The notes under the pieces: generated by a model
Told to the model about the DNA's origin: nothing
The model's input: only the letters and a program-made list of their open reading frames with translations
Databases searched by the model: none
From: Mizuhopecten yessoensis
Lineage: Eukaryota
Assembly (NCBI RefSeq): GCF_002113885.1
Contig: NW_018404512.1
Coordinates: 1,133,642 to 1,197,641 of the forward strand
Direction of reading: 5' to 3'
Length of the DNA stretch: 64,000 nucleotides
Position numbers and translations under genes: made by a program
Part shown: one piece after another, positions 30,702-63,012 of the stretch
Numbering within the stretch: position 1 is the first letter of the stretch
Layout of the letters: the number at the start of each line of letters is the position of its first letter

Positions 30702-32383
30702 GTTGTACTTAACGGCCAATCATACACAACAAGGAAGTCAAGGACCGGGCACTTATCACCTGGATGTATACATATATTTCTAAGTGAATGGGATGTCAGC
30801 GATCTCTTTGTCATTAAAACAGTAAGAAATACAATCCATTGAGCAGATTTGATTGTGTCGTTCAAGAAGGACTGAATCAATTAATTCAATTGAATGTATG
30901 TTTTCGATATAGATGATATAGTGGTTGTTTCTTCTACCATTGATTTTAGCGTTATTCTTAACAACTCTTTTGTTTTGTTTAATTGTACTTAAATGCCCAG
31001 ATTGAATATGTAGGTAAGAACAAAGATTTTGTAGAACAAAAGAAGAACATACTTGTGTTGCATTTCATAGACTTGAAAGTTCCATATTTATAGATGATTA
31101 GCTATGCTAGTACAATGGCCGGTATATGCCCTTATACAGAACCTATCTACTTCACAAATTTAACATTTCATTACTTTTGCATTTTAGCGTAAACATGCTT
31201 ATTTCCGTTTATCATAATGACCCCATGGTTATGATACCTACTACAGTAAGGATGCATTCCATTAATGGATCAAGCTTCATGTGAATGCAAAACCTTGAGT
31301 TTATTATTCAGGAAGAATTTTTCTTTTTATCGAGATATCACAGGTGAAGCTATTTGAAAACTGACAATTAAGATAAATAAATGCATAGCATGGTATAAAC
31401 ATAGCATGGTATGATATTTTAATACTGAACATATAGTGAATACAATGGTTGAATATCATGATAAATTAAATTTATTTTATATTGTCTTATTCTCCGTTTC
31501 TCACTGTTGTCATTTCGCATTATGTTTTGCTTCGATTTCGTTAGGCTATGTTTTGTTGTTAATAATATTTTCTGTCGACGATGAAGATTTTTTACATCTT
31601 TTTACGGCAATTCTATTAAATATTTCGTTTCGGAATACTTTAGACATGTTCATTCTATAAATAGTTATGCAAATAAATTGAAGTAGAGTATAGCAGTTTC
31701 ATGTCTTTAACCTTATGAATGCTTTCGTCTTATTATTTCCATCATGGACAGATGACCCATGCCTTCCTACGCCGTACCAAGCTATAGACCACCCATATGT
31801 TGTCACCCCTTAACTATAAAGCGCAGTGTGATTCTAGCTTAGTGGTGAAATGGTATCGTTCAACTTCCGTCGCCGGTGTAACTTTACCCACAACTGCAAT
31901 GATTTAAATGCATGCGGAACGGGGTGTCCTTCATGGATGGACGACGGTAAAAACATTTTTTATTTAACACAAATCGAATGGGGGACATTAAATAACGTTA
32001 AAGCAAATAAAATAGCAGTAATTAACCTAACATACGAGTCCGTACACGACCAATCAGTACGGGTTTACGCCCGGCTTCAAAAGAAGGTCGGTTAAGTTAA
32101 ATAATGGAAACAGAATTAAACATATCAAATTAACTCTTTAAGTGGGACTAGATCCATATCGGATACAGGAGCATCCTTCTATTTGTCATGTAGGAGGAGT
32201 GCGATTTGGGGTTATGATGGGCGCGGTATACATGTGTATATCTATGATAAGTGTGAAAAGAAAATCAGTTATATATTTTAGGTTAACTTATTGAATTTCA
32301 GAGTTTCCAAATGATGTAGAGACAGCAGAAATAAAGATGTGTATACGTTCTATGTTTGCATCGTGCCAACTGACTTGGATTAT

Positions 32384-32811
32384 GGGCGGATTGGTCGAGT
32401 GGTTAACACTCCGGCCTTCCACGCAGGCGGCCGGGGTTCGAAAAAGAGAAAGTGTTTTTCTCCTGCCAACACAACTCCAACAACCCAGGTGAGGTATCCA
32501 TTGGTGTGGGGTGGATGTTACGGTTTCTGTGCTGTAGCATTCAAGTGAGGTGGCACTATAAAGAAGCACGGCCCCATTACAAAACAGAACACAATACATC
32601 TCCAGCACACACACAGGTATATATACACACATAGGGAGATATGAGCCAGGTGACATAGGTTTAGAGTTAGGGCCTAATAAGGCAGCTCCTGCGAATTTCT
32701 CAAAACATGTATTGATAACTGCATATGTTCATTTTATTAACTGTATAACCATGTACTCTAAAGTGCTTTAGAGTGGCTTATGTTAGTTAGATAGGGCGCT
32801 ATATTAATAAT
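32384..32811 (+). mobile_element. tRNA-derived SINE inserted within a D8C exon
   Basis: Pol III A box (tggtcgagtgg) and B box (ggttcga); central caagtgaggtggcactataaag resembles the MetaSINE core domain; L2/CR1-type tail aaagtgctttagag...gcgctatattaataat. Confidence 0.85.
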
Positions 32812-33584
32812 ATACGGATGAAAAACTGCAATACGTTTTATGTTTCCGAATTGCAGCAGGCATCGACGTGTCCATCAGCGTACATGTATTGTTTTGGTAA
32901 ATATGTATTACATATAGTATACATTGTCATATCTAAGAGTGATATAATAGTAATAATAATAGTATACAACATTTTATGGTGCCCTATTTGATTTGAAAAG
33001 TTACTCGAAGGCGATTTACAATACATGGATATTAGTATTCCTACATTGCCAGTTATATATTTAGTCGTCAAAAAGGCATACCAATCAGCAGTATACATAG
33101 AATATGATACATGTCTATCCTACGCATCCAAATAGGTTTTAATTACAACGTGTCTTTTGCATGTATCATATTTCCATTTCATAAGTTAAGTTAAAAATAA
33201 CTAGACGTAGTTTATAAGTAAATCTTCCCTGTGGTTGCGTAAAAAAGAAATGTTAAAAAAATGGTAAAATTTGAATTGTGTAAATTCGTTTGAAAAACAG
33301 ATTTCGAATAAGTAAAACTTTTTTTGTCAATATCATGCATATATTTTTGTAACAGGTACTATTTCGGTATATACTGAAATAACTGATTACTTAACAGTTG
33401 TAGATGTCGAAAAGCATTGATAATTACATATTGATTTTATCTGAATAAATCATGGTCGTTTTTTTGTCCATTGTAACGTCTTCTTTTTCTGTTAGCAGAG
33501 TACAGTTTGCTAGTTTGAAATGTCTTTCGTATAGCACCGTTTTTTCTTCTCACATAATACCGTCATAATTCGCTGCTCTAAAGA

Positions 33585-33700
33585 CCTGTTGACTGCCCAA
33601 ATTATCGCCTGCGTAATTTAATTCTCCTTGACTGCCCATATTATAGCCTGTGTAATTCAGTACCCCTTGACTGCCTTTAATACCGCCTGTGTAATTAAGC
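33585..33700. repeat. 39-bp tandem repeat, 3 copies
   Basis: ttgactgcc....at.gcctg.gtaatt x3. Confidence 0.7.
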
Positions 33701-33981
33701 GTTGTTCGTTTGGCTGTAGCATCGTCTGTCATTTGCCTACTGTAACACCCCCTATGTAATTTATTTTGAACATCTCCAGCAAGGATAGAATTATGCTCGT
33801 CATTGTTATTTGAGGGTGACAAATTTAAAGCTAATGATAGACATATGATTCCCCCCTCCCCCCCCCNTAACATGAATCATTACTTTGATTTATGTTGGAT
33901 TAAGATAATGCAAATCCATAACACCTTGCTTGGTCCGGATCTGTAACATATAGAGTTTGATACATATACGTATTCTAACCC

Positions 33982-36770
33982 TAACAGTAGATATGTACAC
34001 TAAACATTAGATATGTACACTAAACAATAGATATGTACACTTAACAGTAGATATGTACACTAAACAATAGATATGTACACTAAACAGTAGATATGTAACC
34101 AAAAAGGTAAATATGTACACTTAACAGTAAATATGTACACTAAACAGTAAATATGCACACTAAACAGTAGATGTGTACATTGAACAGTAGATATGTACAC
34201 TAAACATTAGATATGAACACTTAACAGTAGATATGTACACTAAACAGTAAATATGTACACTAAACAGTAAATATGTACACTAAACAGTAGATATGCACAC
34301 TAAACAGTAGATGTGTACATTGAACAGTAGATATGTACAATAAACATTATATATGTACGCTAAACAATAGATATGTACACTAAACAGTAAATATGTACAC
34401 TAAACAGTAAATATGTACACTAAACAGTAGATATGCACACTAAACAGTAGATGTGTACACAAAACGGTAAATATGTACACTGAACAGTAAATATGTTCAC
34501 TAAACAGTAAATATGTACACTAAATAGTAGATATGCACACTAAACAGTAGATGTGTACATTGAATAGTAGATATTTACACTAAACATTATACAAGTGTAT
34601 ATGTACGCTAAACAGTAGATACTAGATATATACATTAAACAGTATATGTATACTAAACAGTAGATATGTACACTAAACAGTGTAGATATATACACTAAAT
34701 AATAGATATCTACACTAAACAGTAGATATGTACACAAAACGGTAAATATGTTCACTAAACAGTAAATATATACACTAAACAGTAAATATGTACACAAAAC
34801 AGTAGATATGCACACTAAACAGTAGATGTGTAAATTGAACTGTAGATATGTACGCTAAACATTAGATATGTACACTTAACAGTAGATACTAGATATATAC
34901 ACTAAACAGTAGTTATATACACTAAACAGTAGATACTAGATATATACACTAAACAGTAGATGTATACACTAAATAGTAGATATGTACACTAAACAGTAGA
35001 TATATCCACTAAACAGTAGATATATACTCTTAACAGTAGATATATACACAACACAGTAGATATGTACACTAAACAGCTGATTTGTAAACTAACCAGTAGA
35101 CATGTGAACTAAACAGTAGATATGTGCACTAAACATTTTATATACACACCAAACAGTAGATATATCCACCAAACAGTAAATATAAACACCAAACAGTAGA
35201 TATGTACACTAAACAGTAGATTTGTAAACTAACCTGTAGATATGTGAACTAAACAGTAGATATGTACACTAAACAGTAGATATGTACACTAAACAGTAGA
35301 TATGTACAAAAAACAGTAGATACAAAGATGTATACACACCAACCAGTAGATATACACACCAAACAGTAGATAAATACACCAAACAGTAAAAATACACACC
35401 AAACAGTAGATATATACACCAAACAGTAGATATATACACCAAACAGTAGATATATACATCAAACAGTAGATATGTACACTAAACAGTGGATATGTACACT
35501 AAACAGTATATATGTACACTTAACAGTAGATATATACACCAAACAGTAGATATATACACCAAACAGTTAATATGTACACTAAACAGTAGATATGTACACT
35601 TAACAGTAGATATATACCCCAAACAGTAGATATATACACCAAACAGTAGATATGTACACTAAAAAGTAGATACAAGGTGTATACACACCAAGCAGTAGAT
35701 ATGCACAACAAACAGTAGATATATACACCAAACAGTATATATATACACCAAACAGTAGATATGTACACTAAACAGTAGATATGTACACTTAACAGTAGAT
35801 ATATACACCAAACAGTAGATATATACACCAAACAGTAGATATCTACACTAAACAGTAAATATGTACACTTAACAGTAGATATATACACCAAACAGTAGAT
35901 ATATACATCAAACAGTAGATATGTACACTAAACAGTAGATATGTACACTTAACAGTAGATATATACACCAAACAGTAGATATGCCAAACAGACAGTAGAT
36001 ATGTACACTTAACAGTAGATATATACACCAAACAGTAGATATACACACCAAACAGTAGATATACACACCAAACAGTAGATATATACACCAAACAGTATAT
36101 ATATACACCAAACAGTAGATATGTACACTAAACAGTAGATATACACACCAAACAGTAGATATACACACCAAACAGTAGATATATACACCAAACAGTAGAT
36201 ATATACACCAAACAGTAGATATGTACACTAAACAGTAGATAAAGGATGTATACACACCAAGCAGTAGATATACACACCAAACAGTAGATATACACACCAA
36301 ACAGTAGATATGTACACTAAACAGTAGATATGTACACTAAACAGTAGATATGTACACTTAACAGTAGATGTATACACCAAACAGTATGTATATACACCAA
36401 ACAGTAGATATGTACACTAAACAGTAGATACAGTGTTTGTACACTTAACAGTAGATATGTACACTAAACAGTAGATATGTACACTAAATAGTAGATTTGT
36501 AAACTAACAGTAGATTCGTGAACTAAACAGTAGATATACACATTAAACAGTAGATATACACACCAAACATTAGATATATATACCAAATAGTAGATATGAA
36601 CACTAAACAGTAGCTTTGTAAACTTAACAGTATATATGTGAACTTAAGAGTAGATATACACACTAAAGAGTAGATATACACACTAAACAGTAGATATATA
36701 TACACTTAACCATAGACATATACACTTAACAGCAGATATGAACAGTAGATATGTGAACTGAACAGTAACT
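33982..36770. repeat. 20-bp satellite (taaacagtagatatgtacac), ~135-140 copies
   Basis: Continuous 20-nt period; variant caaacagtagatatatacac dominates after ~35150; produces spurious VYISTV/YCL ORFs. Confidence 0.97.
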
Positions 36771-39434: not shown

Positions 39435-40120
39435 CCAATAATGTAACCTTTACAATTTGTGGTAAATATATAATCACTCTATTTTGTTATATAAATTGTG
39501 TTTTTAAGATCTTTGCCTGACTTACGAAGAGTTCCGGATGGGTTATAAACGATCGCGAGGTCACGTAGCAACTGTATACGAAGATAGCATGTGTGATGCT
39601 TTGGTCCGTGAGAAGTGGTACCGGTTTATCGGGGAGGCTGGTGGTGACATGACTACCGACATAGAAAGTCTGATGACGTGCAGCTCTGGTACCTACTATT
39701 CTCTCTGGATAGATGGTCAATACTTCCTGATTACTGTTCATCTTCACATACAATTTGAATATATGTTTTTATAAAGACTATCGTCAATGTCATAGTTTTA
39801 CCTTACACCATGAGGTCTTATTAAAATTTAACCAATTGTACCTGGCATTCATATAACTTTTCAATGTAATGTTTAATATTAAATGCCATTTATGTTACGA
39901 CACATAATTTATTTAATAAGGCTGGATACTGGTAATCTATCCTTTATAATACATTTGCATGTATTGGAAACTTAATGCATTATATATTTATTTTGTTTAC
40001 ATAAATCTATCAATTCGAAACAAATTCAAAGAACTGCTTTTATATATATATGCGACAAACTTCTTTAAGAATATTTCATATTAACACATTGATATAAACA
40101 CTAGATACCATTGGAATTGA
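39435..40120 (+). pseudogene. Duplicated segment carrying a copy of gene B D8C exon (39509-39715) with flanking intron
   Basis: 207-nt exon DLCLTYEEF...WYRFIGEAGGDM...LWIDG, near-identical to 50461-50667; intronic similarity runs from ~39435 (=50385) to ~40120 (=51035). Confidence 0.85.
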
Positions 40121-43100
40121 TTTTATATTTTTTTTAGAAACATACAATATGCAGCATTATGTATATGTTGTTGATAATACTAAGTTGTTTACAACAGGTC
40201 AGTATAATATCACCAACAAAAACTGTACAAACTCACCATTCCCTACTACAACAAGGAGGACGTCACTGGTATGGACAAAAGATACTGGCACGACATCTCG
40301 GACACAACACACAACTACAAATACTCCAACTCGACCAACCACTGCTGATGGGCAACCAACTCCGCTACCGACAATGTCGACATTTATTGGGAGGATACAA
40401 ACAACTTCGGAACAACCTACTGGAGACTCTGTATCTGGTTAGTTAATATCACCTTGTTGGTTTAACTTGATGATGTTAACATTAACAACGTGTGACACGT
40501 GCAATATACTTTCTACAAAACAAAATTCTAGATTTGTATATGTGTTGCTGTAGAAACGTGACACGGTAAAAGAGGTAAGGAAGGGTTACGCTGTTTATCA
40601 ATGTATCTTCTATCTTCGTACAATTTCGAGTCATAGGATATTACTCCCGCTCCGTGAATTACATGTATACTGCTTTGTTCCGTCTGTCAATCAAACCCTT
40701 TGCGGTCGTTTTTCCCCCAACAAATTTTGGTTTTTAATAAGAATATTTGCCTTAGACAAAATAAGAACATGCTTGGAAAAACGTGATAATATATATATAT
40801 ATGTCATTGAAATTTCAAAGGTATGTCTGAATTAAAACAAGTTCGGAACATTCGAATATGGGTATGATCGGTCAAAATTCACTGTCGTTGTTACTAGAAA
40901 TATTCTTTCACAAATATGATATTAACGTTCCTTGTTATCACTATATCGGTCGTATTTCCTGACAGAGTTTTACAAACTTTACATATATTTTTCCTAGACA
41001 ATGTTCTTGACACTTTCAAACATGCACATGATCGTCGGTCAAAGGTCAAGGTCATGTCGTTAAAGGGATCAACAGATAATAGATGGAATGTACATTGGAA
41101 TGGGGCATGCTACTTATTTCCTTTCTCTAGTTTAATCATTTAACACTTACTAAATTACATATTATCATATTATTTCACACATACGATGTTATGTGTGTAA
41201 ATTTGGATTTCTGTTTATGAGTAAATATTAGTTGTTAAATATTTTCAGGTGTTGGAATACACAGAATGATTATAGAAAACGATTAAAATGTATACCTCAC
41301 TCCTGTTGTTGTGGCGGTAGTGTGGCTTTGTATACTAGTGTTGACAATCGTCTTTCTTACCAGGTAAGTTGACCTGTAATGCCAATTACACCTCCTGAAG
41401 ATAGTGGTAAATGCAATTATCTATCGAACACATCCGTAATTTGAAACGAATATAAATCGCTTTGTTTGAATCTGCAGAAATTGGTACATCATGTTTGCTT
41501 TACTGTCTAGACCAAATGACAAACCAAGTTATTTGAAATAAAGATTAACGTCTATAGTGTAGTGTATTATTAAAGAAATATAATATGTATCTACTAAAGA
41601 CTTCGTTCAATGTTCTATAGATGAAGTAGTTAAATACATCATGTAATGTATTGAAGGTGAAATATAGAGTATGCATAGGAAAGACTTGTTTATACTGCAT
41701 CATAGGAGAAAAAAAGCTGTATCTAATTAATTGTTTATTTATTGTATTATTGGAATTCTATTTTATATTTAGTATACAAAGTAAAAAGAATTTATCATCC
41801 CTACTCTGTACGGCCTAGGCCTCTTTTTTGCGAGTAGTATTGTTTCTATATTTGCCAATGGCTAAAAACATAAATAAAAAGGTTTATTTTGAAGCGAGCA
41901 TTTTCGTGCACACTCTTACCATCCAACTCGGATTTATCAAAAATATTTACATTTTCCGTTCTTCTTTTTTCCCGGATATGTCCCTGCCTTCAAACCCAAA
42001 TGGAGGTCCAGGATGTACCAAGTGCAGTAAAGGTTTGTGTATGGACATATTGTATAAACTACGTGTACTCTTTATATAATGCGCAATTACATTTGTATAT
42101 GCTGTTTTACTATCTGTGATTATGTATTTCTTAGCATACATATACTATATCTGTATTATGTGTATAAAACGCAATATGTATATATCCTTTACTACTTGTA
42201 TATTGTTTTATTACATCCTTGTTGTACGAATACTTGCTGCAACCAGGAAAACTCAAATATGGCGTCATTTTATAAATCACTTTGATATTTACGTTGTACA
42301 GTGTTTTGAATGTATGTCGATAAACAATTCATTCCTCACTCAGGTGTTTCTTTCGCCTAGGACAAGTCACTTTTGGCTTTGTGCGATGGTTTGTTGTCCG
42401 TCGTCGTGCGTCGTCTGTTGTCCGTGTATCCTCGACACTCTAGGGGTAAGCTAACTTTACTCTCTCTCCAACCCTAGACTGTGTCTAAAACTAAAAGCTT
42501 GCGGGTAGCTATGTCATTGGTCTAAGTTACAAATATCCTGACCAATCGCTAGGCTTGTATCTGTATTTTAAGGATTACATAAGAGAGACACCTTACTTCA
42601 AAGCCTGTCTATTTTACCTTTACGCGGCCAAAGATTATTTTGATTTACATCCAATGATCAAGCTAGTCTTACCGTCTCATCCACAACGTGACTTACATCA
42701 AGCCTTTGACTTTGTCCTGTAGTATTCCAGGGTTGCAGAGAACGTAAGTGAGCGTACTCCCTAGATATCAAGGGTGTTGTCCGTAGTGTGTATGTTAACA
42801 ATGACCTTTTTAAGTCTTTTCAAAACAACACATCACATACAATTGTGCGTAGGGAAGCCATTACATGGTAACCTCCCTCCAGAGGTCCGACAGTGAGGCT
42901 AAAAGAAGTGAAACTGGTTAACATTATAAAACCCGTCTAGTTCAGTCCCGGGTCTCACAATTAAATACTCTTCTTTATGGAGGGAAAGTGCTTTGTCAAA
43001 AATGATGAATTTTATTACCCTGGGTCATCCATACTCAAATATCTGTCTCCAGTTTATGTAAAATGATGTGTGACACTATATTCCGTATTATAAAATACAA

Positions 43101-44024: not shown

Positions 44025-45720
44025 GAGACAATATGACAGGTTAGTTTTAGACGATATTACGAATAGTTTAATGACTACTGGGGGAGCTACTTTCTGACAA
44101 TATGATGTTTTACTTATAGACAATTTAGCCAGTTACGAACAAACATTATGACGGGTGCTTAATTAATAATATTGCTGGTAATTTATGGACAATATGACAG
44201 GTTACTTATGAACAATATCAACTTTACTTGAATCTATCCAAATAGAGGCTGCTCGAATAATTACAGGACTGCGTAAAGGAACCTCACACTATAAACTTTA
44301 CTGTGAACTTGGTTGGGAGACCTTGCTGCAAGACGAAAAAACACAGACTTATTCTTCTATACAAAAATCTTACAGGAACTGCAACCACTTATTTAACTGA
44401 ATTAATTGAACCCTTTTTCAACAATATGAACTCATACCTATTGAGAAATGAAAGAATCTTTACAATTCCTGTGTGCAGAACAAATACTTATGCCAAAAGC
44501 TTTATTTCGCCTTCACTTAAATATTATAATGACCTGACTAACATCACATCACTATACCAGTTTAAACAACTTTTAAGAAGAGCTGTAAGTGACATCATGT
44601 TACAAGACACAAGTAGAAACTTTACCTTTGTCAACGCAGGTGATAGCAAATACAACATCATACTCTGCCAACTTAACCTTAGTAACCCAAGTAACCTTAA
44701 TTTTGATCTACACAGAGATCATCTTCTTGAATCACCAACGAGTACCTGTGGTGATGCCCATAACACAGTACATCATTTATTTTTTTTCTCATTAGTAACA
44801 AGTATGATGAACCACGTAAAACCCTTAAGGATAACTTATTTGATGTTAATCACAATCACTACACTCTGGATGTACTTATATCTGGCTGTGGTGATTATGA
44901 TGAACAAACCAATGTAAATATATTTGATTGTACTGCCGAGTATGTCACAGCTACACATAGATTTCCACATTTATAATACATTATATATTTCTGATTTGAT
45001 ATTATGTCTCTTAAATATAAAAACCATCAGTTACGACTGTGCTTCTACAAACTAAACATTGTGTGTCATCATCACCCTTTCCTTTTCCTATGACCGCCTT
45101 TTCCCCCTTTGATCTGATAGGCATATATTTTGTTTGTTTTGTATGCTAAGTATCATTCATCCTAATTATAGCATAGTGTTGTTTTATGTGATAGAATTAT
45201 TAGTAAGTAAGGACAATCTCATAATGGTGGACCAATTCAAAACCTGAGTTTGCATCTTTCTGTTTACTCAATTTTGTCATTCATATAGTAAAAACAAATT
45301 ATAAAAAGATTGGAAAATCCTTGATTTACCTACTTATTAACAAATGGCTACAAAATATTGATTTGAATCAACCAACACTTCAAAGTCTGCCAAATTCTTT
45401 CTTTCTTAATTATCTTTACTATGAAAGTCAGAATGCAGTATCCATGACTGGCCCCAAAACTCATGGGTGAATGACCAGTGGCTGATAAGCCAATATGGAC
45501 ATGTTTGGTCTGTATCCCATGAGTGGAGGGAATCCTGTCATGGATGTTAGATTCGAGGCTCTAAAAAATTATAATTTTGGAAAACATAGTGAATACACTA
45601 TTTCATATATTATAACAACTCTTAAATGTTGTCCTTACTTCCAAACTCATATCTCATATTTAAACATTTTATGTTTCATACTTAAAATAATAAACTTTGA
45701 AATTTCAAAATAACAACATA

Positions 45721-45766
<46 letters not shown>

Positions 45767-46816: not shown

Positions 46817-49800
46817 ATGGCGCTGATTCCTGTGATGCTATTTCTATGTTACGTTAACTGTGTTACCACAGGTGAGAAAATAATTTGTTATTATTTGATT
46901 GTAACTTCCATTTTGGATATTCCGATATAGCAGAATACATGTTAATATCATAGTACTATTTATTTATCATTGTATTTACTGTAATACAACAACTCCATTA
47001 TAACGATACAGCAGGGACTCTACATATTTGTTGAAAGGTTGTCATCTTGTTTATCACATTAACACTAACATGGCACTTTACCCTGAAAGTTCTATTTATT
47101 TCAAACCTGTCTTGAAGATATGTCAATTTATACAAAATCGATTGTGTTCGTTTTGAAATTTATCAAATACTTTGTTTTATAATTGTGTCAATGTTAAAAG
47201 CTGCATATAACTATAATGTCATTTCATTCAAAATGTTTAAATATGTAACAATTAAATACTCACTTTTGATAGACAAAATGACAAAGTTGGTCACCATGTA
47301 CGTTATAAATGTGAGTGACCGTGTACGTTATAGATATGCGTGACCATATATGTTATAGTTGAGGGTGACCATGTATGTTACAGATGTGGTTGACTGTGTA
47401 TGTTATAGATATGGGTGACCAGATATGTTATAGTTGAGGGTTCCATGTATGTTACAGATGTGGTTGACTGGGTATGTTATAGATATGGGTGACCATATAT
47501 GTTATAGTTGAGGGGGACCATGTATGTTACAGATGTGGTTGACTGGGTATGTTATAGATATGGGTGACCATATATGTTATAGTTGAGGGGGACCATGTAT
47601 GTTACAGATGTGGTTGACTGGGTATGTTATAGATATGGGTGACCATATATGTTATAGTTGAGGGGGACCATGTATGTTACAGATGTGGTTGACTGGGTAT
47701 GTTATAGATATGGGTGACCATATATGTTATAGTTGAGGGGGACCATGTATGTTACAGATGTGGTTGACTGGGTATGTTATAGATATGGGTGACCATATAT
47801 GTTATAGTTGAGGGGGACCATGTATGTTACAGATGTGGTTGACTGGGTATGTTATAGATATGGGTGACCATATATGTTATAGTTGAGGGGGACCATGTAT
47901 GTTACAGATGTGGTTGACTGGGTATGTTATAGATATGGGTGACCATATATGTTATAGTTGAGGGGGACCATGTATGTTACAGATGTGGTTGACTGGGTAT
48001 GTTATAGATATGGGTGACCATATATGTTATAGTTGAGGGGGACCATGTATGTTACAGATGTGGTTGACTGGGTATGTTATAGATATGGGTGACCATATAT
48101 GTTATAGTTGAGGGGGACCATGTATGTTACAGATGTGGTTGACTGGGTATGTTATAGATATGGGTGACCATATATGTTATAGTTGAGGGGGACCATGTAT
48201 GTTACAGATGTGGTTGACTGGGTATGTTATAGATATGGGTGACCATATATGTTATAGTTGAGGGGGACCATGTATGTTACAGATGTGGTTGACTGGGTAT
48301 GTTATAGATATGGGTGACCATATATGTTATAGTTGAGGGGGACCATGTATGTTACAGATGTGGTTGACTGGGTATGTTATAGATATGGGTGACCATATAT
48401 GTTATAGTTGAGGGGGACCATGTATGTTACAGATGTGGTTGACTGGGTATGTTATAGATATGGGTGACCATATATGTTATAGTTGAGGGGGACCATGTAT
48501 GTTACAGATGTGGTTGACTGGGTATGTTATAGATATGGGTGACCATATATGTTATAGTTGAGGGGGACCATGTATGTTACAGATGTGGTTGACTGGGTAT
48601 GTTATAGATATGGGTGACCATATATGTTATAGTTGAGGGGGACCATGTATGTTACAGATGTGGTTGACTGGGTATGTTATAGATATGGGTGACCATATAT
48701 GTTATAGTTGAGGGGGACCATGTATGTTACAGATGTGGTTGACTGGGTATGTTATAGATATGGGTGACCATATATGTTATAGTTGAGGGGGACCATGTAT
48801 GTTACAGATGTGGTTGACTGGGTATGTTATAGATATGGGTGACCATATATGTTATAGTTGAGGGGGACCATGTATGTTACAGATGTGGTTGACTGGGTAT
48901 GTTATAGATATGGGTGACCATATATGTTATAGTTGAGGGGGACCATGTATGTTACAGATGTGGTTGACTGGGTATGTTATAGATATGGGTGACCATATAT
49001 GTTATAGTTGAGGGTCCCATGTATGTTACAGATGTGGTTGACTGTGTATGTTATAGATATGGGTGACCATATATGTTATAGTTGAGGGGGACTATGTATG
49101 TTACAGATGTGGTTGACTGGGTATGTTATAGATATGGGTGACCATATATGTTATAGTTGAGGGTCCCATGTATGTTACAGATGTGGTTGACTGTGTATGT
49201 TATAGATATGGGTGACCATATATGTTATAGTTGAGGGGGACTATGTATGTTACAGATGTGGTTGACTGGGTATGTTATAGATATGGGTGACCATATATGT
49301 TATAGTTGAGGGTCCCATGTATGTTACAGATGTGGTTGACTGTGTATGTTATAGATATGGGTGACCATATATGTTATAGTTGAGGGGGACCATGTATGTT
49401 ACAGATGTGGTTGACTGGGTATGTTATAGATATGGGTGACCATATATGTTATAGTTGAGGGTCCCATGTATGTTACAGATGTGGTTGACTGTGTATGTTA
49501 TAGATATGGGTGACCATATATGTTATAGTTGAGGGGGACTATGTATGTTACAGATGTGGTTGACTGGGTATGTTATAGATATGGGTGACCATATATGTTA
49601 TAGTTGAGGGTCCCATGTATGTTACAGATGTGGTTGACTGTGTATGTTATAGATATGGGTGACCATATATGTTATAGTTGAGGGGGACTATGTATGTTAC
49701 AGATGTGGTTGACTGGGTATGTTATAGATATGGGTGACCATATATGTTATAGTTGAGGGTCCCATGTATGTTACAGATGTGGTTGACTGTGTATGTTATA

Positions 49801-52800
49801 GATATGGGTGACCATATATGTTATAGTTGAGGGGGACCATGTATGTTACAGATGTGGTTGACTGTGTATGTTATAGATATGGGTGACCATGTACATTATA
49901 GATTTTGGTAAACATATGTATTATCGATATAGGTTGCAATGTAAGATGTTGATGTGACAGAGGGATAATGATTAATTTGCTTGTTTTCTTGTCCTCTATG
50001 ATGATATAATAGTTTTTTCGTTCTTTTTCCAGACACTGCGTTAGAATGTTTCATTTTTTATAAACGTTTCTTTCCAGGTTAATTATCAACACAGATCAGA
50101 CAGATTGTTTAGTAAAGTTTGAAAAAAGGAACATCACATTTTACCCTGAGATCATTGTCTGACTTCTGATGTGTTACACACGGTTTGTAAGCGATAATGC
50201 CAGGCCTAGCAGAAATTATGTAGGGAAAATGTGTATGATGAAAGAATATGTGACGCTCATAAAAAAGTTAAAGTTTGTGTGATGTACCAAACGTTTATAC
50301 CATAGGTCAAGGATCCATTATGATTATAGTTTCCAGGAAACCATAAGCTCTTGAAATTTATTTCTATACGATAAAAAATGCTTCTAATAATGTAACATTA
50401 CCAAGTTGTGTTAAATACATAATCACTCTATTTTTTATTATATTAATTGTGCTTTTTAAGATCCTTGCCTGACCTACGAAGAGTTCCAGGTGGATTATAA
50501 ACGATCGCCAGGTCACGTAGCAACTGTATACGAAGATAGCCTGTGTGATGTGTTGGTCCGTGAGAAGTGGTACCGGTTTGTGGGGGAGGCTGGTGGTGAC
50601 ATGACTAACGACAGAGAAAGTCTGATGACAAACAGCTGTGGTACCGTCTATCCTCTCTGGATGGATGGTCAGTGCTTTCTGATATACACGTTTGTTTATA
50701 AATATAAACATACCTTTGAAGACCATGATCAAAGTCATATATTTACCTAACAACGTGAGGTCTCAATAGTGCTCTACAACATTTACATGGCATTCATATA
50801 ATCTTTCATGATAATGTCTTATTTTAAATGCCATTTATGTTAAGACACGTAATAAATAGGTCCGGGTACTGTGACTCTTTCCTGTATAATTTCAATGCAT
50901 TATATATTTAATTTGATTTCATTAATCTACCAATTTAAAATAAAGTCAAAGAACTGGTTTTATGTTATTTATGCGACGAACTTGTTTAATTCATTAGAAG
51001 ACATTGATCATTACAACAGATGTCAATGGAATGAATTTACTCTAATTTAAGTTAACGGATTAAATATGTATATTTTCAAATATATCCACAAAGGATTTTG
51101 TTTTAAATATTCTCCAGGTGAGATTCCTGAAGTTGCTGAAGGGATCGTTGACAGAAAAGTTTGCTTAAAGTCAATTTTCTCGTCGTGCCACAAGTCATTC
51201 ACAATCCAGGTTAAGAACTGCTGTTCATACAGAGTGTACTACCTCCACAGTGCGAACATGTGTCCGTCCTCTTACTGTGTTAGTAAGTACCATTTTCAGA
51301 TACACTTATAGATGTATTGGAAATAAACAAAACATGAATGAAAAATCGTCGGTTGAAATAAACAAAACAAATTTCAATGGCTGTTTAATTCATTAGAAGA
51401 CATTGATCATTACAACAGATGTTTAAGTTTTAATGTTTTTTATTTAAGTTTTTCATAATAAGTTTTTAATGTTTTTCATTTAAGTGAGGCAGTGGAAAAT
51501 GTCTTTGATATAACCAAATTACTTTGTAGATGAAGGGTTAGCCATTCTGGTTAAATTGTCAAGGTTAACAACCCGCCTCTTGTATAATCTGTCTGAATTA
51601 TCATAACATTTTATTAACTTTGCAATACAAGAGACAATAATATATACGTTGTGAATGATACAAAGGACCTATGCTTTGTAGTAAAACGTGAGCCTCGTGA
51701 CCGACACAATCTTTTCTATATATATGCTATTCATTTTGGTCTAATAAGGAACAGGAGAATAAATATGAAAATTGCATACTCCTATTATTTTGATAATTCA
51801 TGATACTGTCGTACTGCCATGGTGATGGCTCGAGTGATATTGACCAATTAACATATATCCTAAGGATTCCACTAAAAACCTTCAGGTCCCAGTCTTGTTC
51901 CTCCTGTCGACTGCCCCGGTCCATCTACGAACTCTACTACACGTGCCTCAACTACGACTGAGACAACTACATCTGGGGATACTACTACCGGTATATCTAC
52001 GAAGGAGACGAAAACTACCACGCAAACAACTTCGGCAAAAACAGGTACTAGTGAGTAAGAGCTTGCCATTTTTGTGTAGAATCTGATATAGTATATGTGT
52101 ATTGATGATTTCCGTAAAATGCGGACATACCGGTTTATAAAGTGATAGCAATAAATAGGTATTCTTCATAATTAAAACCGACACTTTGAGGACAATTTGT
52201 TTAAATCTTTCAAAGTAAATTCACAAATCACAATTGTTTGTTTTTTGAATAAATCAAAGTAGAACAATTTATTAAGTTTTAACATTGGATATTTATTTAG
52301 AACGTCTTCCATAAATGGTGTTTTTTTTTCATTTTGGAGTATTAAAGTGACACAAACATTTTTAACTCAATTGCCACAATAATATACATCAATGTCATCA
52401 TTTACGTTCAGTACTTAACACTAACACTTAGGTCACCTGTAGTTGGTATTTCTTGATATATTCTATTGTAATAACAATTTGAAATCAAGAACCCATTTAA
52501 ATATCCTTTATTTTTCGCAAAAGGTTTTAGTTTAGCAAGTGTGTTTTGGAGTTGTCTTAAGTTCAAGTACATATTTTCTTTTGATTTTGATGACATCTCA
52601 ATTACTAGCTTTAATAACTCCTGTTAAAGTTGTATGTACATGTATATAACTCCTTACAATAACTTTCATTCACACTAAAGAAATATCAACGATAACCTTT
52701 ATAGAATGAATAACAATAACATTATACCAATTGTTTCAGATGAAGTGACAGCACCAGCATCAGAAAGAAGCTCAGACCCAGTAATCTTTGTGCTAGCAGT

Positions 52801-53592
52801 AGTATGCGTTGTGCTTCCAGTGTTGTTTTTCGGGTAAGTTGTAATCATATAATTTCTATGGTTATATAAAGTGATTTTTATTGTCTTTCAACTTCTTGAT
52901 TAATGTATGAGTGTCAGGGTGCGTTTTTTTGGTGTTTTTTAAGACTAAGGCGTACCATATGATTCCTTTGCAATATGTATATGTTTTCCTTTATTCCTAA
53001 TAACTCAAGTGATATGTATCAATAAGATTAGGTTGACGATGGCAATTATCAGTTTTATCAAAAAGGAATAAACCTGAAAAAAAAAGTAAATCAATTTACA
53101 AATGACCTTACTTTCAGGATTGCATTCGCCCTGTACATGAGGTGTAGGAGAGAAAAGGGTCTACCCGAATCCTGTCATGTGGGGAACGACGCAACAACGC
53201 ATCATTCCAGGGACATGAACAGTGCTTTCACCGAAAACTCTCACTACGAACAACTTCAGTCAAAAATCCAATCAGACGGCGAGTATCAAGATATAAACGG
53301 TTCTTTAGTAAATCACCACTCATGGACTAATCCAACGACTGTAGTTCACAACACGTATCAAATCTCTGAAAAACAAAGACAGGAGAACTGTATAGAAGGT
53401 CCGTATTATGTGCTGAATCCAAGTAAAGTGCAATCACACCAATCTCCCTACGAGGATTTGAAGTTGCAAACAAGCTCCAATCCGTACGACATTTTATCAC
53501 AAACTGCTGCTGATTCGAATAAAACGTCAAATGTGGCGTTAAAGGAAGCAGACGCCAACCCCTACACTGAAATACAACAGTGTACGGAATAG
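46817..53592 (+). CDS. Gene B: type I membrane receptor, D8C (uromodulin/GP2/OIT3-like) domain + mucin stalk + TM + Tyr-motif-rich tail; 386 aa
   Basis: Exons 46817-46871 (signal MALIPVMLFLCYVNCVTT), 50461-50667, 51118-51282, 51886-52050, 52740-52833, 53118-53592; GT-AG, phases 1,1,1,1,2; 1161 nt open. D8C motifs DPC, CD..WYRF.G.AG, CGT.YPLWMDG, RKVC, IQVKNC, YYL..C.SYC. Confidence 0.9.
47290..49900. repeat. 75-bp (3 x 25-bp) satellite, ~34 copies, in intron 1 of gene B
   Basis: Unit gaccatatatgttatagttgagggg-gaccatgtatgttacagatgtggtt-gactgggtatgttatagatatgggt; apparently identical copies ~47490-49010. Confidence 0.97.
50461..51282 (+). CDS. Gene B D8C-domain exons (50461-50667, 51118-51282)
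   Basis: Match ORFs 50490-50750 and 51066-51311 between splice sites. Confidence 0.9.
53118..53592 (+). CDS. Gene B terminal exon: end of TM and cytoplasmic tail with multiple YxxL/I motifs
   Basis: ORF 53137-53592 contains YEQL, YQDI, YYVL, YEDL, YDIL, YTEI. Confidence 0.9.
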
Positions 53593-55512: not shown

Positions 55513-55585
55513 GGGGCCAGTCTGGAATTCGATCCTTTGGCATTTGATTGTATATTATCACTCTAACCAGTTAAACTACCGGGTC
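55513..55585 (-). mobile_element. Degenerate tRNA-like SINE head
   Basis: Minus strand reads cccggtagtttaactggttagagtg...ggatcgaattccagactggccc (A- and B-box-like). Confidence 0.5.
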
Positions 55586-55586
55586 A

Positions 55587-55761
55587 ACGGATGTGTCCTG
55601 GCCAAACTTTTATTACAGATATAGCCAGACGGATGTGTCCTGGCCAAACGTTTTATTACAGATATAGCCAGACGGATGTGTCCTGACCAAACATTTTATT
55701 ACAGATATAGCCAGACGGATGTGTCCTGACCAAACGTTTTATTACAGATATAGCCAGACGG
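55587..55761. repeat. 43-bp tandem repeat, 4 copies
   Basis: acggatgtgtcctg.ccaaac.ttttattacagatatagccag at 55587, 55629, 55672, 55715. Confidence 0.9.
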
Positions 55762-56679: not shown

Positions 56680-57390
56680 TAAGACAGGGTTGTACCATAC
56701 GAGTGGTTAAATAAAGAAAATGTTCCGGTATTTGTAGTCAGGCAGCTGATGGTATAGGATGCGAGTGTGATTAAACAAAAAGGGTTGCTAATATATTAAC
56801 ATTATATAGGGTCTGTTCTGGGATACGAGAGTTGTCAGATAAAAGGCGTGTTTTAAGATATTGACGTTGTTTAAGGTATGGTCTGGTATACGAGAGTGTT
56901 TAGAGAAAGGGAGATATTAGGATATTAACATTATATCGGGTATGGAAAAGGGTACGAGCGTGATTAGACAAAGGAAAAAAATAAGTTATTGACTTTACGT
57001 AGGGTATGGTCTGCGATACGGGAGTTGTCAGACAAAGTAATGTATGGGGATATTAACATCCTGTAGGGTATGGTCTGGGATACGTGAGTTGTCAGACAAA
57101 GTAATGTTTTGGGATATTAACATCCTGTAGGGTATGGTCGTGGATACGAGAGTGTTTAGAGGAAGGAATGTAATAAAATATTAGCATTATATAGGGTTTG
57201 GTCTGGGATATAAGAGTTGTAAGACAAAAGGAATAAGATATTAACGTTATGTAGGGTATTGTTAAGATTTGGATAAGATAAAGAAAACGTGAGAGCTTAA
57301 ACAGCCTTTAAAAGATAAAATATTGTATGAAATACGAGAGAGGTTGAACAACAACATATACTAGATATAAGGGTATGTTATGTGATGAGA
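56680..57390. repeat. Degenerate ~62-bp tandem repeat, ~11 copies
   Basis: tattaacattatatagggtatggtctgggatacgagagttgtcagacaaag recurs. Confidence 0.8.
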
Positions 57391-58581
57391 TATGTATTCA
57401 GAAAAGTGATATTGCACTGCATGGCGGAGTAACCCTATACCTATAGCACCGTACACAGTTGATGCCACCTGTGTATTCGCCTTATGAATCTATATTTACA
57501 TTTCTATATGAAACTTCCTTCCTTGAATTTTCACGTAATTTCATAAAGCAGCAGCGTATTAAGCATAAGTACAGTTAAAACAAAGTGTACATTTAATGTA
57601 TCGATAACCGACACGCACATGCTACTTTGTATTAATCTAGAATAACTTGATTCTGGTTTTTTCACTTCTCAATTTAAATAAGTATGTTCAACTTTTCGTA
57701 TAATGAAACTTATTATGAAAGAAAGATCTAAAGGAACAAATCCGTGCATCAATTATTACTCATTTTCATTACTCATTTGTCATTTTCCTGTTATAGTACA
57801 CCTTCAATTGATTTAATTAATTAAAACGGACAGGGTACGGACGCATACATTCAGGGTACTGATCACATATAACAATTGATGAAACAAAATGTTAACAATA
57901 GAACATATGTATACAGTGTGCCCGGTCTTTGTAACGACTGGCATGCATTACATAAACTGTATGTAGTAAAGTTATCAAACGAAAGACAAAATATATTTTA
58001 AATAATAAAAGTAGCGTAGCCGTGGTAAAGTTTATCATTTAGTAGCACCAATATAGGGAGCATATGTGTGTAGGTCATTTATCTTTTTGGATCTACGTTA
58101 ACAATGTCTACCCCTTTACCCAATCACGTGACCAGGAACAAGTGGTAATATCTAGTGTTCATATTTTCGACCGAGCAGGTGAGATAGAAAATAATCTATA
58201 CCAAACGGTTTTTACGCCAGAACAATGTCAAATGCAATAACAAATCACAACGATGGGAGCTAAAGAACAAATGGAGCGCACCCCATTGATTCACCATAAT
58301 GTCTTACATTTGCATGTGAAGAATGTTCATGAAAATTACAAGTGCGTGCCATTATCGACTGTTTACAGACACTGCTATTATAAAGGCCATGTTTAGAAGG
58401 CAGTATCAATTGTGCATTCATGTTACACCCCGGAATGTCAAAACCAATGGGTGTATTGACAGCAAATTGGTAGGATTCCAAATCAGACGTAAACCAAATG
58501 AGTAACAGATAGGTTTTAAATCTCACATAGACATGTAGTCGTGTAGACGTGTACGTGGATATTTAAACAAACGAGGAAGGC

Positions 58582-60863
58582 ATGGCAGTATTGATTCCTG
58601 TACTTACCCTTTGCCTTGTCATCGCTGGTAGTGTGGCAACAGGTAAGATCTACTTTTCTTCAAAGTATGATGACAAAGATACGCCGTCTAGATAATTCCA
58701 AGTACAGGTAAATCACCTCAAGTCATTATACATGTAGTAGTCAGTATACACCTATACTTATTTATCATTGGTGATGCTTATACTTTTCAGTGCAACATAT
58801 AAACTACCATTGGTTTTACTAGCTATATCTTCATTTCAATGGAGATCTGTAAACAGTAACCATAGATTTTATTTGCATGATTTAATATATCTTGTAACTG
58901 TGACCAATCAGAACGGTAATCTCTATCAATTGCTTTCCTAACCTTAATGTTTGCAGTTTTACTTGGATATCACATGTACTTGGTTGTTCTGGTACACATT
59001 TGTTCTATTCATTACTATAGCTTATTTAATAAGACATTTGATAACAGTATCGATAATCTGAACAGTTAATAGCAGAAATAGGTAGAATTAATTTGAAAAC
59101 ACTTCAAAATGGTACCATCCGCGTTTCACGGCGCAATTTCAAGAACTTGGTGTTTAATATTCCGCTACTTATTTCCGCACTTTTTAAACACTTTCACTTT
59201 TTGTCGTTGTCCTTCAAAATACAATTAATAAAAAAAAATTAAAAAAAAAAAATCTCGTTCTATTCATACTGCATACCTATGGCAAAATATACTTATATTT
59301 AAACCTTGCTTCGGACTTGTCAAAAAATCGAAATTCTACCATACTCGTTAAGTGTATATAGTATCCAACAGAATACCATTTAATATCTTATATAAATTAT
59401 TTATAATATTCGTCTAATGATTTGATGCTTCCGTATCTAGTCTAAAAAAGAGTTATGGTCATAATGAAATCCTATTTGAAAAAATATGCATTGGAATTAT
59501 TATTTTTAGTTAAACCCTGGATGATGATATCAAAAGGTGTTGCATGCGTGCAAAACGATATGAAAGAACATATGTATATTTTCTTATAAAAAATAACCTA
59601 GAATTATTCCATAACAAAAATATTTATATTTATCCTAGATCCCTGTTTGACATACGAAGATTTCACAGCCGACTCAACACGATCGCCTAGCTACGTAGAA
59701 TCTGTGTACGACAACAAGAATTGTGACGTAACCCTCACTGAGAAATGGTACAGATTGGTAGGGGACGCGGGGACTGACCTGACTAATGACAGTAGTGTTT
59801 TAGTTTCTGGTGGATGTGGAACATCATATCAGCTCTGGATGAATGGTGAGTAATCTTCACAGATAAAACTTCAAATTATTGAATTTACAATAGAAGAAAA
59901 AACTTAAAACACTAATGCATATCACCAGACATATAGAACCAGATTGATAGAACCACAGTAGTACTACCAGATCCAAAACTTTTTGTGAAGTTGAATAGAC
60001 AGCCAAATAGAGATCTACGGAGCACAAATCAGGTAGAGATCGCTGCTTAAAACCTTCAAATTATGATTTTTGATTCATATATATATATATTTACAAACCA
60101 TCTACACATTATCTTTTCCACAATTGTACCTTGTTGATCAACCATGAAGCATCGTCCTGATCAACTTTTGCGAGGTACAAACGTTGATTAATTCTATACC
60201 CAAAAATGTGGCATACAAAGTTTATCTTATAAAAGTCCCCAATAATACACATTTGAAAATCAAAATTTACAATGCAAAAGTGTAGTACAGTACACTTGTT
60301 TAAGTATCAAAAGTGTAACATATGAATGTGTCCCATAGACAATGTTTGAACAGAAAAGTATTAGAAAGTGTCCGGCCGACATCGGCCATCGAAGTAAAAT
60401 GCTTTATGTATATTATAAATTTGCGTTAATCATCCACAGGTTATACAGGAAGTGTGCGTATTTTTTCGGAAATTTATTGCATGAACAAATAGCTTTATGT
60501 TTTTTCTTTCTAAACGTTTTACATACGATATGCAAGATATCGTTAGATTTTAATGATCTCGTTATTTGTTTAACATTAATAAATTGCCGGGTTTTTTCAT
60601 TATAAAAATCGAACATGGAATGTGTTATCTATACAACTACATGTATGTTACGTAATGCACATGTACCCTTCGTTCCTTTACAGGCTCTGTACCAGATGTT
60701 TCAGATGAAGTTGTGGATAGACAAATATGCATGAGGTCACCCTTCTCAATCTGCCACAGTTCTTTCACCGTCCAAGTGAAAAATTGTTGCTCTTTTCGGG
60801 TTTATCATCTCAAGAGTGCAACTAATTGTCCACAATCCTACTGCGTCAGTGAGTTACTTCAAT

Positions 60864-60898
<35 letters not shown>

Positions 60899-63012
60899 TA
60901 GCATGGTAATTTAATCCTTTAATGACTTAAAGTGTTATGCTAGAATATACTATACGCTAGGATCATGTCAACACATTTAACCAGAAATTTGAAAATAACT
61001 CAGTTAAGGATTTAAACTATAATGTATGATTTGTCATCATTATAAAACTGAATATAATGACACATAAACATATATCTTGACGAGACTCTATAATTGTTTA
61101 GGTCCCAGTTCTGTTCCTTCGGTCGGCTGCCCTACCACTACGAGTACCACGGCTGGAACAACAACTACAGCTGAGGATACTACTACCAGTGTTTCTACCA
61201 CGACAGCAACCACCACACAAACAGCTGCGGCCAAAACAATAAACGGTTAGTAAGAGTTTGTTATTGTAACTAAATTGTGTCTTGCGTTTTTGTACCAAAA
61301 TATATTCCTTTAATTCCCTTCCCCCACTTCTGTTCAGCAGGAGTTTAGTTATATTGGATTTTCTTTGATTAACATAAGAAACTTTGCAATATTTGTTTTT
61401 AAATTTACTTGTGGAGTTACTACTCATTTCATATGTCCCCTGTACAATTGAAGACAAAATGAGCTGCAATTTAATGTTGGTTATTACTGTACGCCACAGG
61501 CTGTCGCTAGGCTACCTTCACAATTTCAGCAGTGTCGTCAATATAGTGTTGCATAAGAAAGAGAGAACTAAAACACTAGCTATGGACCATAAAAACAAAA
61601 ATGTAGTTTCATTGTTATACGCCTTCAGTTAGAAGAATACACTTCCATCTAAGTGTTGTGCCTTTAGTGGTATGTGCTTTCTGTGTTATATACTTGCATT
61701 GTTAGAATAATGAACTGTCTTGAGTGTTCTTTGCTGTCCATTTAAACAGATTGAACAATTTTAGTGTTTTGTGTTGTCCGTGTAAACAGATTGAACAATT
61801 TTAGTGTTTTGTGTTGTCCGTGTAAACAGATCGAACAATTTTAGTGTTTTGTGTTGTCCGTGTAAACAGATTGAACAATTTAAGTGTTTTGTGTTGTCCA
61901 TTTAAACAGATTGAACAATTTTAGTGTTTTGTGTTGTCCTTGTAAACAGATTCAACAATTTTAGTGTTTTGTGCTGTCCATGTAAACAGATTCAACAATT
62001 TTAGTGTTTTGTGTTGTCCATGTAAACAGATTCAACAATTTTAGTGTTTTGTGTTGTCCGTGTAAACAGATTCAACAATTTTAGTGTTTTGTGTTGCCCG
62101 TGTAAACAGATTCAACAATTTTCGTGTTTTGTGTTGTCCATGTAAACAGATTGAACAATTTTCGTGTTTTGTGTTGTCCGTGTAAACAGATTGAACAATT
62201 TTAGTGTTTTGTGTTGTCCGTGTAAACAGATCGAGCAATTTTAGTGTTTTGTGCTGTCCGTGCAAGCATTTTAACAACGTCATTGTTTTGCGCTGTCCGT
62301 GCTAACAGATTGAACAACCTTCAGTGTTAACTGTTTGAACGGCCCTCAATGCTCGCTTAATTACCATTGGTTTCACACTTTATGGGCAGAACTATTTTTC
62401 TAACTTGTATTTACATTTCTCTTCAGGCGACAAGCATGTGACGATAGTGAACACCGTTAGCACTGAGATCATCATAACTGTAGTTGTCCTGTTAGTGGTC
62501 ATCACAGTGATACTCATAGGGTAAGATATGCTTTAATCATAATTTTCCAAATTATGGCTCAGTAGGTTTTCTTTTTCTCCTTGGAAACGTGCTATATATA
62601 TTGACAGAGATATGCTTACCATCATTGATTGGCAAGAACAAAACAGTTATTTTATCATAATTATTATTAACGACAAAAAGAATTTCGGTATAAATAAATG
62701 TATCAGTACTAGAAAGAAACAGCCGTTAAAATGTCATCTGCAGGCTTATTATATAGGAGCATTCCTAGAAACGTGTCTTGACAACAATAAATGACTGTTT
62801 GGCCCATACTTATGGTTACCATCATTCTTTGCAGAACTGCCATATGTAAATATAACAAGTGCAGCAAAGTGGACGCCGAGAGACGGTTGGCAAATAGTAA
62901 TCCTGTTCAGTTCTTTCCACAAAATGGCTACATGGAAATCTGCGACCAGGCTCAAGTGGTGGAGAAGGGCGGGTTCAATAACAGTGCGCCTGCCAACACC
63001 CGCCACATGTAG
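58582..63012 (+). CDS. Gene C: type I membrane receptor, D8C domain + mucin stalk + TM + short tail; 282 aa
   Basis: Exons 58582-58642 (signal MAVLIPVLTLCLVIAGSVAT), 59639-59845, 60684-60848, 61102-61245, 62427-62520, 62835-63012; 849 nt open; the D8C and TM exon sizes (207, 165, 94) and all phases are identical to gene B. Confidence 0.9.
59639..60848 (+). CDS. Gene C D8C-domain exons (59639-59845, 60684-60848)
   Basis: DPCLTYEDF...CDVTLTEKWYRLVGDAG...CGTSYQLWMNG|SVPDVSDEVVDRQIC...VQVKNCCSFRVYHL...CPQSYCV. Confidence 0.9.
61735..62340. repeat. 40-bp minisatellite, ~15 copies, in intron 4 of gene C
   Basis: tgtaaacagattgaacaattttagtgttttgtgttgtccg in tandem. Confidence 0.95.

Follow-up and report, generated by a model that had tools for sequence, protein, structure and literature searches.

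Mucin-stalked D10C-domain membrane proteins in a gene cluster of the scallop Mizuhopecten yessoensis

Intact genes and decayed copies at the locus

The DNA analysed here, referred to as the window, is a stretch of 64,000 nucleotides from the Yesso scallop, Mizuhopecten yessoensis (scaffold C1185, positions 1133642-1197641; assembly of 988 Mb, 34% GC). It contains a single N, at 33867, and unless a scaffold is named all positions given below are those of the window. A tblastn search with conserved pieces located four loci, here called A, B, C and D and all on the + strand, that resemble the D8C domain of uromodulin (UMOD) and glycoprotein 2 (GP2). This UMOD/GP2-type domain is also known as D10C, and the latter name is used here. 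Loci C and D are intact genes of six exons. In both of them every intron is GT..AG and the intron phases are 1,1,1,1,2, so that the two intact genes with matching phases described in an initial annotation of this DNA stand, exon by exon, against RefSeq. That annotation counted one pseudogene; there are two decayed copies, loci A and B. The whole-protein analyses used database proteins that are equivalent to the window exons (P0007, P0112 and P0180).

Gene C (46817-53592) matches LOC110445796 isoform X1 exon by exon (P0180, XP_021346261.1 / OWF53923.1, 384 residues), and two annotation pipelines agree on the model. The RefSeq start of isoform X2 (P0112) lies inside exon 2. Exon 1 (46817-46877) has the start codon, the signal peptide and a phase-1 donor, and matches residues 1-18 of P0180 exactly; the flank 5' of it is colinear with the P0013 gene on scaffold C5516. 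Most of intron 1 is taken up by a 75-bp satellite of about 35 copies with 97% matches, spanning 2.6 kb (47293-49901). Exon 2 (50461-50667) and exon 3 (51118-51282) encode the N-terminal and C-terminal halves of D10C. These are followed by a stalk rich in Thr, Ser and Pro in exon 4 (51886-52044), a juxtamembrane stretch and transmembrane helix in exon 5 (52740-52833), and in exon 6 (53118-53592) a cytoplasmic tail of about 155 residues and the stop codon. The tail holds six YxxL/I motifs, among them YEDL-x8-YDIL. Logan RNA contigs without mismatch, from three runs in three studies, join exons 4, 5 and 6 at 52044>52740 and 52833>53118, both GT..AG, and RNA contigs show a 3' untranslated region of about 560 nt, reaching to about 54150.

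Gene D (58582-63012) encodes a protein of 282 residues (P0007, XP_021346265.1 / OWF53924.1, UniProt A0A210QYW7), which its exons match without mismatch. Its layout is that of gene C: start codon and signal peptide in exon 1 (58582-58642), the two halves of D10C in exon 2 (59639-59845) and exon 3 (60684-60848), a Thr-rich stalk in exon 4 (61102-61245), the transmembrane helix in exon 5 (62427-62520), and in exon 6 (62835-63012) a tail of 58 residues, in which there is one YxxI motif, and the stop. Intron 4 includes a 40-bp minisatellite of about 15 copies (61723-62317). The tail is 49% identical to that of a relative in Ylistrum balloti.

The stalk exons of the two genes consist of 54-57% Ser, Thr and Pro, with 21-22 Thr in about 60 residues, and in each protein two strongly hydrophobic segments stand out, at the N-terminus and close to the C-terminus. 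It is secure that both genes encode type I membrane glycoproteins, with a cleavable signal peptide, an N-terminal D10C, a stalk of about 60 residues of the kind that carries O-glycans, a transmembrane helix and a cytoplasmic tail. The mucin-like stalk, membrane anchor and tail of the initial annotation are borne out by these features, and for gene C by the RNA over exons 4-6.

The decayed copies were read using tblastn with the exons of genes C and D and, for locus A, a three-frame reading. Locus A (31752-32916) is a pseudogene. The exon for the first half of the domain (about 31752-31945) has a stop and frameshifts, and the next is broken into two pieces (32277-32384 and 32809-32916) with an insertion of about 425 bp. 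A more divergent D10C gene of two exons is found 10 kb upstream of the window, at C1185:1123069-1124074, and by its sequence locus A looks like a pseudogene of this type. Locus B retains an exon for the first half of D10C (39509-39715), the protein of which is 79% identical to that of gene C exon 2. With the second D10C exon lost to a deletion, the next exon is a Thr-rich linker (40198-40437). This linker is of the type seen in P0004, a gene on C5516 with two D10C, with which locus B is colinear at 77-81% DNA identity; the colinearity breaks at 40123/40140, where the paralog has about 600 bp that include the second D10C exon. The transmembrane exon of locus B (41249-41363, the end being approximate) has an in-frame TAA at 41284-41286, and a short tail exon, again of the P0004 type, lies at 41959-42030 (both ends approximate).

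A decayed DIRS-like retrotransposon (27662-29273, +) sits in a G+C-richer stretch at 26-30 kb and consists of an RVT_1 fragment (38.9 bits) followed by the SAM-like N-terminal domain of a tyrosine recombinase (24.9 bits). Between loci A and B there is a 20-bp satellite of about 136 copies (33983-36744). Between loci B and C there is an open reading frame of 204 residues (44303-44917, +), which has no Pfam match and by eye is like the C-terminal part of a non-LTR (long terminal repeat) or Penelope-type retroelement product.

The D10C domain and its family

Whole proteins were needed to identify the domain, as single exons gave one sub-threshold Pfam match only. The Pfam family D8C_UMOD (PF23283), with a curated cut-off of 27 bits, matches the protein of gene D (P0007) at 34.0 bits and that of gene C (P0112) at 36.6 bits. 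A phmmer search of the Protein Data Bank (PDB) aligns residues 18-151 of gene D with UMOD (E 3.8e-11) and with the decoy module of GP2 (E 4.6e-10). AlphaFold2, run for residues 21-150 with a family alignment of 96 sequences, generated a model with a mean pLDDT (predicted local distance difference test) of 93.9. Foldseek superimposes this model on GP2 (7p6r_A, TM-score 0.85/0.83, root-mean-square deviation 1.6 Å) and on UMOD (7pfp, TM-score 0.85), and returns no other fold with E below 0.9, the next match having E of about 1. Judged by both its sequence and its predicted structure, the scallop domain is a true UMOD/GP2-type D10C, as had first been proposed.

The D10C of UMOD and GP2 has ten cysteines in five disulfides: C1-C8, C2-C9, C3-C6, C4-C10 and C5-C7 (numbering of PMC8930769). 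In an alignment numbered in this way the scallop domain keeps eight of the ten positions, Cys3 and Cys7 being absent, and there are two extra cysteines, one after Cys8 and one at the start of the stalk. The mature scallop protein begins, directly after the signal peptide, at D-P-C, in which the Cys is Cys1 of D10C (GP2 C63). It has no β-hairpin residues, and this rules out, in its known form, the groove between hairpin and D10C in which the FimH-binding glycan is held. The glycosylation sites are also different. Gene D has His at the position of UMOD N275, and Leu-Thr-Tyr where GP2 has Q-N-Y-T, so that it has no counterpart of N65. The only sequon that it keeps is W-[ML]-N-G-[ST], equivalent to UMOD N232 / GP2 N122. 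This sequon, WMNGS in gene D, was considered as the FimH-glycan site, and was rejected because the numbering in PMC8930769 makes it N232/N122 and not N275/N65. In gene C the D10C is devoid of N-glycan sequons, and some paralogs have an N-F-T sequon five residues after Cys1. As these structural determinants are missing, the FimH-decoy mechanism of vertebrates is not simply transferable to the scallop proteins, and the description of the domain as a decoy-type module is weakened.

Pfam finds no zona pellucida (ZP) module in P0007, P0112, P0156 or P0004, in agreement with the initial annotation, whereas ZP is picked up by this search in two relatives from corals, P0015 and P0005. There is likewise no Pfam match to SEA or any other autoproteolytic module in the proteins of genes C and D. 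Weak matches to RIFIN, TMEM154 and Stevor were discarded because they are below cut-off and fall on the low-complexity stalk and the transmembrane segment.

A profile search with exon 2 identified 156 proteins at E <= 0.001 among 1.84 billion representatives. The closest relatives are from other scallops (Pecten maximus, Argopecten irradians and Ylistrum balloti), and have one to four D10C, Thr-rich linkers and a transmembrane helix. ZP-less proteins with D10C and a transmembrane helix are also found in Mytilus, Ostrea, Crassostrea, Solemya and Branchiostoma. The layout is thus present in mussels, oysters, Solemya and amphioxus, and is not lineage-specific as had been suggested. Cnidarian relatives keep ZP or epidermal growth factor (EGF) arrays. 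One of the Ylistrum balloti proteins, P0003 (XP_060080901.1), seems to be a RefSeq model that runs two adjacent genes of the family together: partway along it has a transmembrane helix and tail, after which a second signal peptide leads into D10C, stalk, transmembrane helix and tail.

In the M. yessoensis genome, 20 or more D10C loci are spread over about 10 scaffolds. The cluster on C5516 is paralogous to the window, with 74-84% DNA identity, introns included. Comparison of the two clusters shows that the relationships of a gene depend on which of its exons are compared. Gene C and P0004 share 93-97% protein identity in the D10C exons (synonymous divergence, dS, 0.09-0.21) and have unrelated tails. 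From the stalk to the tail, gene C instead resembles LOC110464735 on C5516 (75-85% identity, dS 0.05-0.29), and LOC110464735 in turn has D10C exons 80-89% identical to those of gene D, with tails at 29%. Gene C is therefore a mosaic: its 5' end and signal peptide are P0013-like, its D10C is of the type found in P0004, and its stalk, transmembrane helix and tail follow the LOC110464735 type; gene D has the D10C type that it shares with LOC110464735 and an unrelated short tail. At C5516:242493-256500, LOC110464735 (a D-type D10C with an ITAM-like tail, ITAM being the immunoreceptor tyrosine-based activation motif) lies directly upstream of a D-type gene with a short tail. The ectodomains of this adjacent pair are 87-95% identical and the tails differ, and the order of the pair mirrors that of C and then D in the window. 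Since the modules are on exons of their own, with phase-1 introns between them, paralogs have swapped them as cassettes, as these sequence comparisons show for the ectodomain and tail exons.

Birth-and-death turnover, as originally suggested, is also supported, at the level of sequence, by the two pseudogenes, the paralogous C5516 cluster and the number of loci. The part of that suggestion concerning diversification of the domain fared less well. The ratio of non-synonymous to synonymous substitution (dN/dS), a coarse pairwise estimate made per exon, is 0.08-0.28 for the D10C exons, 0.41 for the tail exon compared with LOC110464735, and about 0.5-1.5 for the stalk. At this pairwise level the D10C exons are under purifying selection, and positive selection is unsupported.

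Conservation of this kind would fit a constant endogenous partner, and raises the question of whether D10C serves in homophilic or lateral self-association. The proteins would then function in adhesion between cells or between cell and matrix, for example in tissue cohesion or in larval or byssal attachment, and not in recognition of microbes. Relatives with two to four tandem D10C on stalks are consistent with this, and in human UMOD sheets D10C makes lattice contacts between filaments (PDB 9NU1-9NU3; bioRxiv 10.1101/2025.05.09.653020). On the other hand, genes that turn over quickly and leave pseudogenes are more usual in families that face the environment, and on balance we consider a purely adhesive function distinctly unlikely, though still a serious rival.

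Cytoplasmic tails and possible function

Both tails contain Tyr, as the initial annotation stated, but Tyr motifs abound only in that of gene C. This tail has nine Tyr, six of which are in Y-x-x-[LI], although just 9.7% of its residues are Leu or Ile (binomial p = 5e-5). The pair YEDL-x8-YDIL has the spacing of an ITAM, and an ITAM-spaced pair occurs in 0.8% of shuffles that preserve composition. The sequence S-P-Y-E-D-L, which overlaps YEDL, fits the pattern of the inhibitory counterpart (immunoreceptor tyrosine-based inhibitory motif, ITIM). The tail of gene D, with its one YxxI, has no ITAM-like pair. In a six-frame search of the whole genome the gene C type of tail is found in two genes, gene C itself and LOC110464735, which is 65-75% identical to it and in which the motifs are kept.

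The explanation that we think accounts best for the whole, and to which we give about as much belief as doubt, is that these are mucin-stalked D10C surface proteins and that the tail of gene C takes part in phosphotyrosine signalling. We infer a receptor function for genes C and D only by analogy; a role in recognition or adhesion at the cell surface, of hemocytes or of epithelia, seems the most likely. The D10C would be displayed at the tip of the mucin stalk as a binding or a bound surface, and not as a copy of the FimH-glycan decoy site of vertebrates. Engagement or clustering of gene C could then lead to tyrosine phosphorylation of its tail, the candidate motifs being YEDL-x8-YDIL, the overlapping ITIM-like S-x-Y-x-x-L, and four further YxxL/I. 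The phosphorylated motifs might recruit proteins with Src homology 2 (SH2) domains, such as a Syk-type kinase, and/or drive YxxPhi-dependent endocytosis. ITAM-Syk signalling, with recruitment of CgSyk, has been described for CgIgR, a receptor of bivalve hemocytes (PMC6994640). Gene D, with one YxxI, may be a weakly signalling or non-signalling partner. Gene C and LOC110464735 would signal or be internalised, and the short-tailed genes would act with them as partners.

Several observations weigh against this explanation. The YxxPhi pattern is the AP-2 sorting consensus, and the motifs of gene C can equally be read as sorting signals. The acidic D/E-x-x preface is absent: H-Q-S-P stands before the first Tyr, and neither ITAM-like pair has a preface. 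ITAM-like patterns are limited to the two M. yessoensis genes, with about 36 other relatives that have a transmembrane helix and tail lacking such motifs; outside M. yessoensis, no gene C tail was found in 5.8 billion proteins, in searches that were word-based and of limited reach, which makes this weak evidence of absence. The claim that the domain is wired as a signalling receptor therefore fits gene C and LOC110464735, and does not extend to gene D or to the other tailed relatives.

The RNA is a further point on the same side. The contigs that cover exons 2 and 3 of gene C agree in all their variants with the P0004 gene on C5516, and their loose ends match that gene exactly, so that among the RNA contigs neither the D10C exons of gene C itself nor the splicing of exon 3 to exon 4 is observed. 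In X20, the only run for which raw reads were examined, there are no reads on gene C. Of the joining of D10C to tail that the initial annotation proposed to check by RNA, the part from the stalk onwards is thus confirmed, and the part from D10C to the stalk is not. We infer the latter from the RefSeq and original annotation models and from the open frame with compatible phases. It might be argued that the gene C model is in part an artefact of annotation, in which the stalk, transmembrane helix and tail are transcribed and the P0004-like D10C exons are silent or belong to another transcript. Besides the paralog variants, it agrees with this that the second RefSeq isoform starts inside exon 2. 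The frame is open, however, with good splice sites through all six exons, the same model was produced by two pipelines, and the LOC110464735 paralog has the same architecture of D10C plus tail. Moreover, Logan contigs drop rarer variants, and for this reason absence from them is weak evidence. We therefore regard an artefact as very unlikely.

It is worth adding two observations on these contigs. Loose ends that join a B-type linker to C-type D10C exons were at one point considered to make loci B and C a single gene with several D10C; this was rejected because the loose ends match the two-D10C P0004 gene exactly and the contigs bear its variants. In runs X4 and X5 a deep contig (depth 150-460) aligns, with four mismatches, to gene C's stalk exon at 51960-52046; the reference assembly contains nothing that matches its next 134 nt, which start 'PSVVNDEETT'. 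The contig may represent a family member that is unassembled or subject to presence/absence variation, or a further splice joint.

An alternative is that the proteins do not signal and are membrane-tethered, mucin-like barrier or decoy glycoproteins of epithelia. They would belong to the glycocalyx or be shed, like UMOD/GP2 or MUC1, with the tyrosines serving only for sorting, apical delivery or endocytic recycling. The homologous vertebrate domain does act in secreted or glycosylphosphatidylinositol (GPI)-anchored decoys (PMC8930769). The mucin-like stalks, the sequon retained by gene D and the short tails without motifs in most relatives are also as expected for a barrier. Against this, the groove and the N275/N65 sites are gone, and gene C lacks any N-glycan sequon in its D10C; sorting would not require as many as six conserved YxxL/I motifs, two of which form an ITAM-spaced pair; and a cleavage module is not found by Pfam. 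A barrier of this kind is rather unlikely in our judgement, though far from negligible.

A stronger version of the signalling hypothesis is that the cluster is a true paired-receptor system built on the D10C fold. One ITAM/ITIM-like tail cassette is found on two D10C lineages, each of which also occurs, in an adjacent or paralogous gene, with a short tail poor in motifs, and the two forms could be signalling and decoy versions for the same ligand. We hold this to be unlikely. If it were true, the logic of activating and decoy receptors would have arisen here independently and without Ig domains, and a domain otherwise known from secreted antibacterial decoys alone would have its first signalling use.

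Relation to known systems

No paper was found in the literature on invertebrate proteins with D8C and a transmembrane helix; the accession numbers are in no paper, and in the library searched all 30 papers that mention a 'D8C domain' concern vertebrate UMOD, GP2 or LZP. The initial annotation left it to a search whether the family is undescribed, and as regards papers it appears to be. The genes themselves have entries in RefSeq and UniProt, with names assigned automatically ('oncoprotein-induced transcript 3 protein-like' for gene D in RefSeq, and 'Uromodulin' for A0A210QYW7 in UniProt), and therefore the D8C similarity is on the database record.

Studies of D10C have been confined to vertebrate proteins with a ZP module (UMOD, GP2 and OIT3) and the zebrafish omcins, as a domain that presents glycan to bacterial adhesins. 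In the scallop the same fold occurs without ZP or hairpin, on a mucin stalk, in a fast-turnover cluster that swaps cassettes, with an ITAM-like tail in two genes. If that tail signals, this would be a non-Ig family of immune or adhesion receptors in a commercially important bivalve, and would give a clue to the role of D10C prior to its recruitment into ZP filaments. Even without signalling, the ZP-less D10C and transmembrane proteins form a branch of the UMOD/GP2 family, in bivalves and amphioxus, that has gone unstudied.

The likeness to membrane mucins of the MUC1 type is limited to the Ser/Thr/Pro-rich stalk, the scallop proteins having no SEA match. Paired and mucin-stalk receptors such as CD300, TIM, SIRP and PILR are closer in layout: they too have neighbouring genes with near-identical ectodomains and alternative tails, and an N-terminal domain on an O-glycosylated stalk. 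The scallop proteins differ in having no Ig V domain, no charged transmembrane residue for adaptors and no homology to these receptors, so that the likeness is one of layout only. For gene C, a functional analogy is provided by oyster CgIgR (PMC6994640), a type I membrane protein of a bivalve that has YxxL/I ... YxxL/I in a tail of its own. CgIgR has five Ig domains, an ITAM with the acidic preface, and signalling demonstrated by experiment, whereas signalling by gene C is a prediction.

By homology, the nearest proteins are UMOD and GP2 (PDB 7P6R, 7PFP; PF23283), with which the scallop domain shares its fold, its sequence ancestry and eight of ten Cys positions. The scallop proteins are unlike them in lacking the hairpin, the EGF domains, the ZP module, the GPI anchor or propeptide and the FimH-binding sequons, and in being anchored by a transmembrane helix with a cytoplasmic tail. 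In genomic terms, the closest described parallel is the omcin cluster of zebrafish (omc1-15; PMC11415648), which is likewise a lineage-specific tandem array of D10C genes with variable repeat number, the scallop relatives having one to four. The omcins keep EGF IV and the ZP module and are predicted to be GPI-anchored, whereas the scallop genes have placed the domain on a mucin stalk with a transmembrane helix and variable tails.

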